The notes under the pieces are model-generated. The model ran no database searches. It saw nothing but the letters and a program-made list of their open reading frames with translations, and was not told where the DNA came from. Shown here in pieces: positions 5,081 through 21,109 of a stretch of DNA of 64,000 bases. This DNA is from Dimorphilus gyrociliatus (Eukaryota; Animalia; Annelida), in assembly GCA_904063045.1 (NCBI GenBank), contig CAJFCJ010000006.1, forward strand, positions 4,480,408 through 4,544,407, given 5' to 3'. The first letter of the stretch is position 1. Every line of letters begins with the position of its first letter. The translations under genes were made by a program, and so were the position numbers.

Positions 5081-6200
5081 CCCGTTAGCGAAAGTAGTTA
5101 AATCAGTGCGTAAAACGGTAAACAGACTTTAAATGACTGTTATTTACCGAGGTATTTTATCTATAAACCGATTAAGGACAGTGATAAGAATAAGAAAAAG
5201 TCCAGTTAAAAAATTAAAGTAGGCTGCTGAATCGCGGGTGATCTCTACTTATTTTGCGTAATATCTTAACTGATAGAAGTAGATTAAAACGGACATTATT
5301 AATATGTCAAGTATAAGATGAAGCGTAAGATAATCTAAGATCGAAGGCAAAATCATTGTAAATTATTAATTTATCAATTAATTTAATATTCTTTGATCCG
5401 TTTTAATTCTTTTTTATTATTACAAATATAGTAGCCAATTAAAATCAATAAAAAAATGTCAATCTTTCAGTGAAAGTTTCTTTTTTTCAAATAATGCGAT
5501 GATAAGAGAATTGAGGGAATGTTGCAGTTCTTCTTTCGTTTCCGGCTGGAGATGATGCATAGGCAGCACGTGTTTTTTTGTTGGGTTTTAAAAATTGATT
5601 TATGTTTTCATTATTTTGCGTTTTCTTTTCGGTATGCGAAAAAGATTTATATATACATATGCTTATACTGAATATATATATATATATATATGCGACTCCC
5701 TTAGCCCAATATTCTTTGGACAGCTGCAAAAGAGGAGAGAAGACGCAACCATATCAATATGTAGGCTAATTTCCAGTAGCCTACAATTCCGATTACGCAA
5801 CAAAATATTGATTAACGTTCTGCATTCATCTTGTATTCAAAAAGCTGCCATAAGAGGCATAGAAGTATATCAATAATTTTTCATTAAGGCTTGATGCTTA
5901 AATTCTGGTTTAATTTGATAAATGAGGAGAAAATATCCAAAACCGTTGTTCCCGCCGCCCCTTTAGCGCTTAACCGTATAACAACTATTACCGACGATAC
6001 ATCTACGCGTAAAATATGCTGGCTTTGTAAAAGAAATACTGTAAAAGTAGTTATATTAAGCGTATTTCAATATTAAAAACCAAGAAAATGTATTTTAAAA
6101 ATTTTCGCAAACTTCTAATGGCTAATATTGTGCAAAGTTTACGAAAGCCCACTGTGATCGGTGCGTATTAATCTCACTAGCCGGACTTTTTGTCTCCGAT

Positions 6201-10623: not shown

Positions 10624-13600
10624 ATGGCGTCAGGACTGAATGGACCGCTCGACGACGATGCTCAGAAGAAGCAGGGAACTAGGTGAGTTTCCAAGAATGC
10701 TGTTCCAAAGCGCATCGTTTATAAAAATCCTTATCTTATCCGCTGATCAATTATGTAGTAGAAAATGAAATCGATAAATCGTTCTATCCGTATTACATTA
10801 GGCGTGTATTTTCATGGATGCAAACGGGATTAAAAATTTGATAATCAGTTGGCTTTGATCAGTCAAACGATGCAGAGAGCGGCAATTCGTAGAGCTTGCT
10901 GTGGAGACAAAGATCTTTATATATCGAAGATATGTAATCAGAGGTAAAAAAACTAGTATAAAACAAGTGAAAGGGGCTTAAACTTTTCCCTTTCAAACGA
11001 CTAAATAGTAGTGAATTTAAATTAAAAGAGGAAAGTGAAAGTTTAAAGCTTGTAACTACGATATACCGCAATGGGCGTGGTCATTTAAGAACTAAATCCG
11101 ATTTAGTCCAGCCCGGCTTATATATACCAATGGTACATGTATATTTGTCAATTGCCTTTAAAAAGCAGAATGAAAGAGGCTGAAAGGTATTCCTTTTCGA
11201 ATAAGTGAGTACGACAGATGGCGTGGAAAGAGAAATTTTACGGGCCGTAATAATTCGGCCTGTACTGTATATATAAATAAATAAATACTCTTTTAAAAGT
11301 GTTAATTGTATATTCTTTTATACGAAGAAGATATTGTTACTCTACTTAATGTATACATTTTAGAGTAACAGTACTCTAGACGGTTTTATTTTCAAGTCAA
11401 TATAATACGGCCAGTTAAAAAAAAAAAGCAACATCAATAATTACGAAATGTTGCCATGACAAAATGTTGGAATACCTGAATATGTTTATGTATCGATAGT
11501 AACAGTTGTTATACATAATAAATAATAGTATGAGTAGAAAAAAGTTGCCGTTCTTGCATCGGTTTTAATGGGAAGAAGAATTCTACTTTTTTAGTATTTT
11601 TTTTCCCTATCATCATTATTTATGTGGGCTGTCGGTAGAGTGCGCCTATTTTCCTGAATTGCAGTAGAGACGCTGTCGTCCGCGTCTTTGTCGGTTGTTC
11701 GCTCTCCTGTCATTTTTCCTAACCGATTTGCTCTCTCTCTCTCCCTTCACTTTCTCTCGTAATTCTCTATCATCTAAGTTACGTCTATTTCTATTCGTCA
11801 TCATCAATTTTTTACTTAAGTGCTGTAAACGAAAAGTAATGGAATAAATGAAAGGGTCTTTAGACGAGGAGGAGGAGGAGGACTCGAGACTGAAGGAAAC
11901 TTGCAAATTTCTGTAATAACATATATGCTATCATTTCTTATTTTATCTTCAATGTGTAACATGATGGTGAAATTAATAAGGAATCTCTTTTGAAAAGAAT
12001 TTTTCGTATTTACTTATAAATGTATATATAAACTATATAAAATATGTATAAACGTAAAGAATGCATTTATCTTACTATAAAATAATCATTGAGTATGAAA
12101 AATTTCGACTGTTTCTTTCATGTTTTCTATCTGCGGTATACCTTATATATAACTTGTTTAATTTTTACATATTCTTCTACTTTCTTTAATGCTCCTTTCC
12201 TTCTAACAGAGTTTTCAAGAAAAGCAGTCCAAATGCAAAGGTTAGTTGTTTTTTTTTCTCCTCCTGCTCAAGGCCAACTTCATCAAATAAATGACGCGGT
12301 TGCTTTTGTATTACTTTTTTCGTCCTTAGGGCTTTATTCGTTATTTTTTTATTGCATTTCTCCCTCAACAGATTACCGTCTATCTGGGAAAGCGGGATTT
12401 CATCGACTACCTTGATCATATCGATCCTATAGGTAAGTTAAATCGTCTCTCTTTTTCAATTATCCTAACGTTTTTATGATATGATTTTTCCTTCTCTTCT
12501 TCTATTTGCATTCGAAACATTTCCGTTTTTACTTATCCCAGATTCTGGCTCCCCTGTAAGATTTTTTCAATATCTCTTATTTAATTGTTTGCTTTAAACA
12601 CATATAGATGGCGTCGTTTTGGTTGATCCGGATTATTTGAAGGAAAGAAAAGTTTTCGCCCATGTTCTTGCAGCTTTTCGATACGGACGTGAAGATCTCG
12701 ACGTACTGGGTCTGACATTCCGTAAAGATTTATTCCTCGCCTCGACTCAAGTTTATCCGCCTTTGAAGGAGAATGAAAAGCCCCTTACGCGACTCCAAGA
12801 AAGGCTTATTAAGAAATTGGGCACGAACGCTTACCCCTTCTACTTTGAATTACCGAAGGTGTGCCCGGCAAGCGTTACTCTTCAGCCAGCACCTGGCGAC
12901 ACTGGTAAACCCTGCGGCGTTGACTACGAATTGAAGACGTATGTCGCCGATAGTATTGACGAGAAGCCCCATAAGCGAAACTCGGTGAGGTTAGCCATCC
13001 GAAAATTGACATATGCTCCCGAGGAGCCTGCACCTCAGCCGAGTGCCGAAGCTACAAAGGATTTCATGATGAGTCCAGGACACTTAAGACTTGAAGCGTC
13101 TTTGGATAAAGAGAAATATTATCACGGTGAATCAATATCAGTGAATGTTTTGGTGGATAACAACACTAGCAAGACAGTAAAGAAGATTAAAATTTCCGGT
13201 ACGTACTTAAGTAAATGGGAAAAAAAGAAAAGAACTTATCAACTCCCTTTACTCTTTCAATTTACGAGTAAAAAATGCATAGTAAAAGAATTTTAAAACA
13301 GTCACACAAAGAGCTTTCATAATGATGTTTGCCGAAACCGTGTACAACACGGTTGTGTACGACTGTACAACCACGTAAGTGTCCTAGCTGCAGGCACAAA
13401 AGGAATATTTCTCATTGTTTTTATCACAGTAGATACATGAATGGAGAATATATATATATAGTTTGCTTTTTGTGCACCTAACTAAAATTTTCCGCCACAT
13501 TTTTTCCAGTTCGCCAGTATGCTGATATTTGCCTGTTTTCGACTGCTCAGTATAAATGCACTGTTGCCGAATTGGAGAGCGAGTAAGTACGGCCAAAAAA

Positions 13601-13682
13601 AAAAAAAACTGCTTGTGCTATAGTTTTTAACCTCTATCTATCTTTGCCCCTCCCTGCCTTCTGCCCCCCTCCCTCTCTCTCT

Positions 13683-13725
<43 letters not shown>

Positions 13726-15152
13726 ATTCCCCTCCTTTTTTATTTTATTTTACAAAAGCACTGTTTTTTTAATAATTAGTCAATTTTAAAGTTTTTTCCC
13801 ACACACCCCTTCTGGTGTTTGTTTGTATGTAAATTCTATTTTTATATTCTTTAATAATCTTTTTTCTTCTTTTTATCTTTTTTCTTCTTTTTGCTTATAT
13901 TCTTTTTATTAATATTATTTTTTTTCTTTTTTTGGGTTTAATGATCTATTACTCTATTAGTTTGATCTCAAATTACTTGTTTGTTTTGTTCTCTTTTCCT
14001 AACTTCCGATATTCTAACCGTACATTCTTAACTAAAACAGGGACGGATTTCCGATTCACCCCAGTCAGACGGGCTTCTGTAAAGTCTATTCTCTGACGCC
14101 GTTACTTAGCAACAATCGCGACAAACGAGGCTTAGCGCTCGACGGCAAACTCAAACACGAAGATACTAATTTGGCGTCTAGTACGATGTAAGTGCCTTGA
14201 TTTTATCTACTTTCTCCTTTATTCTCTCTTTCTTATTCCTTCTATCTTTCTATTTATCTTTCTATCTATCAATATTTAATGCATTTATTTATATTTTTTA
14301 AAAAGTTCTTTAATTTAATTATACTTTAAACGTTGTTTCCTTTGGACCTCCCAAAACACATAAAATATCAAAATAATTCCATAAAACGTACCAATCGTCG
14401 TAATTAGAGGGTAAGCATATTTTAGTGTTCCAACGTTTACTATTTTCGCTTTTTCCATCCTTCGCAATAAATAAACTGCAAAAACAAAAAACAAATTGAA
14501 ATACCATTAATGTTTTGTTGCATGATATACGTGTGAGAATGTTTGCGCAGGCATTTAACGCCACCGTCCTCCACCTCTTCATCATCCTCATCAACTTCAA
14601 ATCACAATCACCGGCGAAAAGGCAAGCACAAAAATCACGGCAGGTAACCCTGCCCGACGTTGCGTGCGCGTCGATTTTCTGCATTTAATGCACTCTTTAT
14701 ATTTTTTTCCCTTCAGCGTACTGGATCCAAGTTCCAAAGAGAACCTCGGTATTGTTGTGCAATATAAAGTAAAAGTTCGGCTAATACTCGGATTTGCTTC
14801 TGGTGATTTGTCGGTCGAGTTACCATTTACGCTGACACACCCGAAACCTGTTGAATCGCCTCCTCCAAGCAGGCCTGAAAGTGAAGTTCCACCAGTTCAG
14901 CAGCAACAGAATAAGCAACCAGCGGAGGCTGCAGTCGATACAAATTTGATTCAACTCGATACCAAGTATGTTTTGGTTTCTGTTTTGTCATTATTAACTC
15001 TATTTATTGATTTGTTCCTTCTCTAACTATTCTTCATTTAATTCTCTAGTGGCGGCGAAGGATACTACGCGAATCAGGATGATGATTTCATATTCGAAGA
15101 TTTCGCTAGACTTCGACTCAAAGGACACGATGGAGACGAGGCTGAAGCCTAA
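10624..15152 (+). CDS. ARRB1: Beta-arrestin (non-visual arrestin, ARRB1/2 co-orthologue, kurtz-type)
   Basis: Exons 10624-10682 (MASG..QGTR), 12210-12240 ([10 protein letters not shown]), 12372-12432 ([12 protein letters not shown]), 12608-13198, 13510-13582 ([13 protein letters not shown]), 14041-14187 ([18 protein letters not shown]), about 14717-14965 (clathrin box LIQLD), 15050-15152 (AP-2 motif [11 protein letters not shown]). Confidence 0.97.
11170..11186 (+). CDS. Candidate alternative first coding exon of beta-arrestin (MKEAER)
   Basis: ATG AAA GAG GCT GAA AG|gtattc is a phase-2 donor like exon 1a, so it would splice in frame to VFKKSSPN. Confidence 0.45.
13302..13374 (+). CDS. Beta-arrestin mutually exclusive exon A ([25 protein letters not shown])
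   Basis: acag|...|gtaagt, 73 nt, phase 1 to 2. Same length and phase as exon B, with aligned V-x-Q-x-A-x-I-x-x-F-x4-Y-x3-V pattern. Confidence 0.8.
13510..13582 (+). CDS. Beta-arrestin mutually exclusive exon B, canonical ([25 protein letters not shown])
   Basis: ttccag|...|gtaagt, 73 nt, near-identical to the vertebrate beta-arrestin 235-259 region. Confidence 0.95.
13687..13723. repeat. (CT)n microsatellite in arrestin intron
   Basis: Direct sequence inspection. Confidence 0.95.
14551..14643 (+). CDS. Candidate in-frame cassette exon of beta-arrestin (Ser-rich + basic)
   Basis: gcgcag|...cag|gtaacc, 93 nt, phase 2-2, open frame [32 protein letters not shown]-richer than the flanking intron. 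Confidence 0.55.

Positions 15153-17923: not shown

Positions 17924-21109
<3,186 letters not shown>

Follow-up and report, generated by a model that had tools for sequence, protein, structure and literature searches.

A tandem pair of 73-nucleotide exons that very probably yields two alternative beta-arrestins from a single gene of the annelid Dimorphilus gyrociliatus

The beta-arrestin gene of the annelid Dimorphilus gyrociliatus very probably gives rise to two arrestins of 437 residues each, by mutually exclusive splicing of two tandem 73-nucleotide (nt) copies of its fifth coding exon. The upstream copy, exon A, is the alternative form, and the downstream copy, exon B, is the canonical one. 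In this work we analysed a stretch of 64,000 nt of the D. gyrociliatus genome (assembly GCA_904063045.1, contig CAJFCJ010000006.1, positions 4,480,408 to 4,544,407 of the forward strand), referred to here as the window, which contains this single beta-arrestin gene. Alignment to the structures 8go8_A and 1jsy_A places the segment encoded by the two exons at residues 235-259 of beta-arrestin-1, comprising strand beta15, the C loop and strand beta16, and the two isoforms differ at 18 of these 25 residues.

The segment lies in a functionally prominent part of the protein. Residues K232, R236 and K250 form the C-domain binding site for phosphatidylinositol 4,5-bisphosphate (PIP2), and the K232Q/R236Q/K250Q mutant (3Q) is deficient in phosphoinositide (PIP) binding; in mammals, receptors with transient arrestin binding show impaired internalisation and arrestin recruitment with this mutant (PMC10030194). 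The site residues are located on strands beta15 and beta16, joined by the C loop (F244), and PIP2 binding has been proposed to propagate through this hairpin (PMC10686989). In mammalian beta-arrestin-1 the swapped piece holds R236 and K250, two of the three residues that bind PIP2 and inositol hexakisphosphate (IP6), and would pass the effect of PIP2 binding on to the interface between the two domains (PMC10030194, PMC10686989).

The gene was assigned using a full-length annelid arrestin as protein query, which led to the D. gyrociliatus protein DgyrCDS5340 (CAD5116454.1, designated P0160 below). It matches the large exon of the window at 100% identity, contains the domains PF00339 (Arrestin_N) and PF02752 (Arrestin_C), and has beta-arrestin-1 as its best PDB match over nearly the full length (E = 9e-152). 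In the tail, LIQLD and a second motif align with LIELD and DDDIVFEDFARQRLKG of beta-arrestin-1, and by sequence the protein has a predicted C-terminal tail with clathrin-box and adaptor-binding motifs. P0160 carries exon A and lacks exon B.

Both exons are 73 nt long and run from the second base of one codon to the second base of another (phase 1 to 2), and either of them keeps the frame open into exon 6. They are 135 nt apart and are bordered by AG acceptors (...aaaacAG for exon A, ...ttttccAG for exon B) and by identical GTAAGT donors, as had been stated in a preliminary description made from the sequence alone. That description had also presented exon A as a diverged homologue of exon B with seven residues kept in register, which is upheld here: 7 of the 25 residues and 29 of the 73 bases are identical. 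Scored with a profile made of 17 homologous exon peptides (canonical and alternative, from other species) plus exon B, exon A ranked second of the 31,276 stop-free 25-mers that the six reading frames of the 64-kilobase window contain, with only exon B higher. Its guanine plus cytosine (G+C) content of 0.44 is close to that of the other exons (0.45-0.49), the three flanking introns being at 0.27-0.33. A chance open reading frame was ruled out for exon A by the profile rank, the exon-like G+C content and the RNA joints described below. At other loci the canonical exon encodes a peptide with 88-96% identity to that of exon B. Adjacent, homologous and of equal length and phase, the two exons between 13198 and 14041 have the attributes of a tandem duplication.

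The RNA data consisted of assembled Logan contigs rather than raw reads, from the runs X1, X2 and X9, which are metatranscriptomes of mixed samples, and from run X15; contigs of these four runs were compared with positions 12100-13600 of the window. All sampled exon A words were present in X1, X2 and X9, which belong to two studies. The end of exon 4 at 13198, which is followed by GTACGT, was found joined to exon A (13302) in these three runs and to exon B (13510) in X2, X9 and X15, with a separate B-holding contig in X1. Every A and B contig exits at the donor of its exon and continues with the same 28-29 letters, identical to window positions 14042-14070. No A-to-B joint was seen in the contigs of the four runs, which drop rare forms. 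Word depths of A and B were 6.5 and 9.0 in X1, 5.6 and 5.5 in X2, and 4.6 and 2.5 in X9. The check proposed earlier, namely whether exon A is used in RNA and without exon B, thus gave a positive answer, with a usage in three runs at a depth similar to that of exon B. A 1018-nt contig of X1 contains exons 2, 3 and 4 joined to exon A and shows zero differences from the window, and the population sampled in X2 differs from it at 7 positions in exon 4, all of them synonymous by our reading against the frame. We took the exact match and the synonymous differences as support that this RNA comes from the same species and from a gene under real selection.

Since each exon is 73 nt long, inclusion of both or of neither shifts the reading frame, as stated in the preliminary description. 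Translation of an A+B messenger RNA (mRNA) reaches a stop four codons into exon B, and an mRNA with neither exon stops 18 codons into exon 6. Nonsense-mediated decay would presumably clear such wrong combinations, so that the A and B mRNAs persist. Judged by these translations, the reading frame by itself seems to ensure exclusivity, which is the simplest explanation. Exon A probably needs an activator, because its acceptor is weak, purine-rich and devoid of a pyrimidine tract or a branch-site match, so that its usage could be regulated.

Other mechanisms were considered. Steric exclusion was rejected, as the intron between the exons is 135 nt long and its CTAAC (13478) lies approximately 105 nt from the donor of exon A and 32 nt before exon B. 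Incompatible spliceosomes found no support, all splice sites being GT-AG. The small hairpin noticed earlier in exon A does exist, with an 8-base-pair (bp) stem; its suggested role in exon choice found no support, as the exon folds no better than shuffled sequences (z = -0.55). Folding of the 402-nt region reached a z of -1.7 only. The sole candidate for competing pairing is that of the A-runs at 13214-13240, before exon A, and 13593-13608, after exon B, which are both complementary to the T-rich tract at 13914-13936 and are of low complexity. A (CT)27 tract is located 87 nt 3' of exon B. Pyrimidine-tract-binding proteins or RNA pairing might act at these low-complexity tracts, and no Rbfox or Nova motifs were present in the three introns around exons A and B. 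Overall, no dedicated mechanism of exclusion was found among steric, spliceosomal and RNA-pairing ones, and none is required, frame-based exclusion being a recognised alternative.

Isoform B has the complete phosphoinositide site, K232, R236 and K250, and isoform A has T236 and N250 in place of the latter two; K232 is encoded by the constitutive exon 4 and is therefore retained in both. The residues characteristic of exon A are T236, R238, F240, M242, M243, E246 and N250. The substitutions R236T, Y238R, D240F, K250N and C251T listed in the preliminary description agree with the alignment to the two structures, and its claim that the swap alters both the phosphoinositide site and the C loop holds at the level of sequence when set beside the published residues (PMC10030194, PMC10686989). 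At the same time exon A retains the fold-core residues V235, Q237, I241 and V253, none of which varies among the compared canonical and 5' alternative (alt1-type) exons, as well as F244 and Y249, and it is surface positions that are altered. In an AlphaFold2 model of P0160, i.e. of the exon A form, both strands and the loop are preserved.

The exon pair is not an invention of Dimorphilus, as far as can be judged from the other loci. Paralvinella, Capitella, Lineus and Lingula have tandem 73-nt exons with AG/GT ends, at the same place and in the same phase, and in all four the divergent exon is 5' of the canonical one. In Paralvinella palmiformis the second 73-nt exon (L001 19263-19335, AG/GTAAG ends) lies about 1 kilobase 5' of the canonical exon (L001 20282-20354). 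In Capitella teleta the alternative exon is at L005 4852-4924 and the canonical exon at 5109-5181; 3' of the latter there is an unannotated third copy (L005 5313-5379), which measures 67 nt if the GTACGT donor is used. Three 73-nt copies are present in Lineus longissimus (L006 33834, 35653 and 37294), where an alternative exon is followed by the canonical one and then by a second alternative (L006 37294-37366) that is annotated as isoform X4, and Lingula anatina has two copies (L007 11853 and 12983). No remnant of a third copy was detected in the Dimorphilus intron 13583-14040. RefSeq isoforms that swap exactly this 25-residue segment exist for the nemerteans Tubulanus and Lineus, the brachiopod Lingula and the chiton Liolophura, and arrestins derived from complementary DNA (cDNA) of Terebratalia and of four chitons carry the alternative form. 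The preliminary description had proposed to look for a syntenic second exon in annelids and molluscs; one was found in Paralvinella and Capitella, in a nemertean and a brachiopod and, by annotation, in a chiton, and none in the two gastropod loci searched, Elysia and Batillaria, which have the canonical exon only. Of the three outcomes that the description had named as refuting its reading (exon A unused, used only together with exon B, or not conserved), none was obtained. No alternative segment was found among approximately 100 gastropod, bivalve and cephalopod proteins, all of which are canonical.

The alternative exons share a set of departures from the canonical sequence, which itself is nearly invariant across bilaterians. 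R236 is absent from every alternative exon examined and is replaced by a non-basic residue, whereas the canonical exon keeps it in several hundred sequences. Y/F238 is changed to V, I, H or R and C242 to V, I, M or Q. At position 246 a gain of K or R is seen in most alternative exons, and E in exon A; K250, lost in exon A, is retained in some lineages and lost in others. Intermediate alternative exons of other species agree with their own canonical exon at 11-19 of the 25 residues. Exon A has its 5' position in common with the alternative exons of other species, has an I-M-M-F core that recurs in those of nemerteans, brachiopods and flatworms, shares its F-A...T-V-V with the Capitella alternative exon, and scores higher with the profile of the alternative class than with that of the canonical class. 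A single ancient origin of the pair is favoured, not proven, because the exon order is conserved and derived residues at positions 238, 242, 246 and 248 are shared between phyla; plain identity fails to tell the alternative exons and the canonical ones apart and does not decide on the origin.

Two further features of the segment were observed in other animals. Flatworm and some unnamed spiralian arrestins (P0066, P0039, P0120, P0104) have an alternative-type V-I-Q-x-A-[DE]-I-M-L-[FY] in the sole form retrieved; the alternative class may extend beyond Lophotrochozoa, or may have displaced the canonical exon in those lineages. Many lophotrochozoan isoforms (P0156, P0237, P0249, P0373, P0148, P0121) have 1-5 residues inserted between the segment and EGFPI, for example SSNR, RQSER, LSKR or R, a second small alternative splice event directly behind the cassette. 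No such insert was present in the Dimorphilus contigs.

As regards function, isoform B would behave as a canonical PIP2-dependent beta-arrestin, and isoform A would have a weakened or re-shaped lipid site, as it lacks R236, K250 and D240 and has R238, together with a different C loop. By analogy with mammalian beta-arrestin-1, it is plausible, though somewhat short of probable, that isoform A forms receptor and membrane complexes of different stability; the preliminary description had likewise proposed different lipid and receptor preferences of the two arrestins. The preliminary description had likened it to the engineered PIP-binding-defective mutant, and the likeness is partial. Two of the three basic residues of the 3Q site are indeed lost (R236T, K250N). 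Unlike 3Q, isoform A keeps K232, adds R238 and loses the acidic D240, so that the charge of the patch is not simply reduced, and 16 further residues are changed, including the C loop. More tentatively, the pair might represent an ancient natural lipid-sensor switch, older than the divergence of annelids, nemerteans, brachiopods and molluscs, the canonical exon providing a PIP2-dependent arrestin and the alternative exon one that engages receptors or membranes without PIP2 or reads a different lipid code. If true, splicing would give an animal with one arrestin gene the kind of functional specialisation for which vertebrates and insects duplicated the gene. In any case, an animal with one arrestin gene can still diversify the protein, and Dimorphilus has kept the cassette despite a six-to-one fusion of the preceding exons. 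Much current work on how membrane PIP2 stabilises or frees the receptor complexes of beta-arrestins relies on the engineered triple mutant, and the exon pair offers selected natural variants of the same hairpin in several phyla.

The pair is a new example of a well-known mechanism. As in CaV2.2 (exons 37a/37b), insect myosin heavy chain, Drosophila 14-3-3 zeta and Dscam1, adjacent homologous exons of equal length and phase, with a length that is not a multiple of three, are used one copy per mRNA and replace a structural element within an undisturbed fold. It differs from these systems by concerning an arrestin gene and because a convincing docking-selector pairing or steric block was not found in Dimorphilus. 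Vertebrate arrestins also provide several proteins from one gene by splicing (beta-arrestin-1 1A/1B, arrestin-1 p44), and 'Isoform 1B' is among the PDB matches. Those vertebrate variants arise by insertion of a C-domain cassette or by an alternative C-terminal exon; they are not mutually exclusive and leave beta15, the C loop and beta16 untouched. Close counterparts are the RefSeq isoforms X1/X2 of Tubulanus polymorphus, the three variants of Lineus longissimus, X2/X3 of Lingula anatina and X1/X2 of Liolophura sinensis, in which the same 25 residues following KKIKIS are swapped, R236 is missing from the alternative form and, where the locus is readable, the alternative exon is 5' of the canonical one. 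They differ in being automatic predictions, or unannotated clones in the case of Terebratalia and the four chitons. Dimorphilus exon A is far more diverged than any of them (E246 instead of K/R246, R238, F240), and the third copy of Lineus and Capitella is missing from it. In the open-access literature, no account of mutually exclusive exons in an arrestin was found, and a paper on cephalopod arrestins does not mention the exon swap. The earlier statement that no such exon had been described therefore holds for searchable papers; the swap itself is visible in RefSeq predictions from other phyla, where it has apparently gone unremarked.

Several observations weigh against two functional isoforms in Dimorphilus. 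The contig depths are low (2.5-9), in mixed samples without labels of stage, sex or tissue, and X15, by far the deepest run (depth ~1500), assembled the B form only. Exon A is perhaps rare or absent in some conditions, since the X15 contigs, from which minor variants can drop out, show only B; likewise, a rare A+B form could be hidden, as contigs lose rare variants. The junction from exon A to 14041 is read from 29 run-on letters, the compared stretch ending at 13600. Compared with alternative exons from other phyla, exon A agrees at just 6-11 of 25 residues and lacks their K/R246, its peptide alone gave zero matches in the PDB, and the model confidence (predicted local distance difference test, pLDDT) is only 72-77 in its segment as compared with >90 beside it. 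If exon A were a decaying duplicate, included by splicing noise into an unstable or inactive protein, isoform B alone would be functional. The missing PDB match, the moderate model confidence and the B-only contig of the deepest run are in keeping with this view, and so are the divergence of exon A, larger than in any other alternative exon seen (D240F, E246), and the weak acceptor described above. We nevertheless consider decay improbable, as A reaches an abundance similar to that of B in three runs belonging to two studies, has an open frame of exact length and phase, exon-like G+C content and a consensus GTAAGT donor, and retains exactly those positions that are invariant in canonical and alt1-type exons. 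Moreover, six exons of relatives are fused into one in this gene, and a useless exon would be expected to vanish from the Dimorphilus genome, which is reported to be compacted. It is extremely unlikely that the A-containing RNA comes from a second, near-identical gene copy or from another strain instead of from alternative splicing. The environmental samples are mixed and the bubble contigs of X2 and X9 are short (132 nt), as such a source would allow, but both exons stand with proper splice sites in one intron-exon series, the long X1 contig joins A to exons 2-4 without a difference, A and B contigs have identical flanks within a run, and RefSeq shows the same swap as isoforms of a single gene in four other species.

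A less likely alternative to functional divergence is that exon A is translated and the isoforms are biochemically equivalent, the pair being kept for cell- or stage-specific expression or drifting neutrally. The residues of the fold core are the same in A and B, and the A:B ratio varies among runs, from about 0.7-1.8 to B only. Side chains alternate along a beta-strand, and residues 236 and 238 should therefore share one face. The basic residue near the site in isoform A, R238, may thus partly replace R236, a further point against a loss of lipid binding, and with this gain on the expected face isoform A is not simply a natural 3Q mutant. The variable retention of K250 in the alternative exons of other phyla also means that there is no single conserved state of the lipid site. 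On the other hand, equivalence does not readily account for the loss of R236 in every alternative exon, set against its retention without exception in the canonical one, nor for the derived states at 238, 242, 246 and 248 common to different phyla, and the almost frozen canonical exon across bilaterians indicates that changes in this segment matter. A visual-arrestin-like isoform was rejected as an explanation of the alternative exon: a nemertean alternative peptide matches beta-arrestin-2 best in the PDB, and its match to squid visual arrestin is no better than that to beta-arrestin-1.

The corrected gene has eight coding exons, the fifth being either A or B (Table 1). The N-terminus of P0160 is wrong, its first 22 residues being intron read in the wrong frame, and the real 5' exons are given by the RNA contigs; the loose contig end before 12208 in X1 and X15 is identical to window positions 10651-10680, which identifies exon 1. 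The deposited protein is thus a hybrid that combines exon A with an incorrect N-terminus, and the record lacks the canonical isoform with exon B.

Table 1. Coordinates of the corrected beta-arrestin gene model and of associated features in the window
Feature	Position	Strand	Remarks
Exon 1, true start codon	10624..10682	+	ATG at 10624, donor GTGAGT at 10683; missing from P0160
Exon 2, 31 nt	12210..12240	+	Joint 12238/40 to 12370/72 in X1, X15
Exon 3	12372..12432	+	Joints in X1, X2, X15; AG/GTAAGT ends; tblastn of P0160
Exon 4, constitutive, 591 nt	12608..13198	+	3' end KKIKIS (K232-S234) plus base 1 of codon 235
Intron before exon A, 103 nt	13199..13301	+	Acceptor region weak, purine-rich; YTRAC branch-site match absent
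Exon 5a (exon A), alternative copy, residues 235-259	13302..13374	+	RNA joints in X1, X2, X9; P0160; profile rank
Hairpin in exon A, 8-bp stem, 3-nt loop	13336..13354	+	Seen in minimum-energy fold
Intron between A and B, 135 nt	13375..13509	+	CTAAC at 13478
Exon 5b (exon B), canonical, R236/Y238/D240/C242/K250	13510..13582	+	RNA joints in X2, X9, X15; homology
Intron after B, 458 nt	13583..14040	+	(CT)27 tract 13669-13723; T-rich tracts
Exon 6, common downstream	14041..14187	+	Loose ends of A and B contigs = 14042-14070
Exon 7, LIQLD clathrin-box-like motif	14717..14965	+	Matches P0160; bounds from deposited model and splice consensus
Exon 8 with stop codon	15050..15152	+	Matches P0160; bounds from deposited model and splice consensus

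In Paralvinella, Elysia and Batillaria (L001, L002, L003) the counterpart of the 591-nt exon 4 is divided into six exons, so that five introns were lost in the Dimorphilus gene. A second contig of X15 (1290 nt, depth 29) has letters identical to 11883-11912 joined to exon 2, which suggests an alternative first exon or promoter without the ATG exon. Outside the arrestin gene, the upstream neighbour (86-1324) resembles a fragment of an ionotropic glutamate receptor, and the downstream neighbour (18051-19790) an ankyrin-repeat protein.

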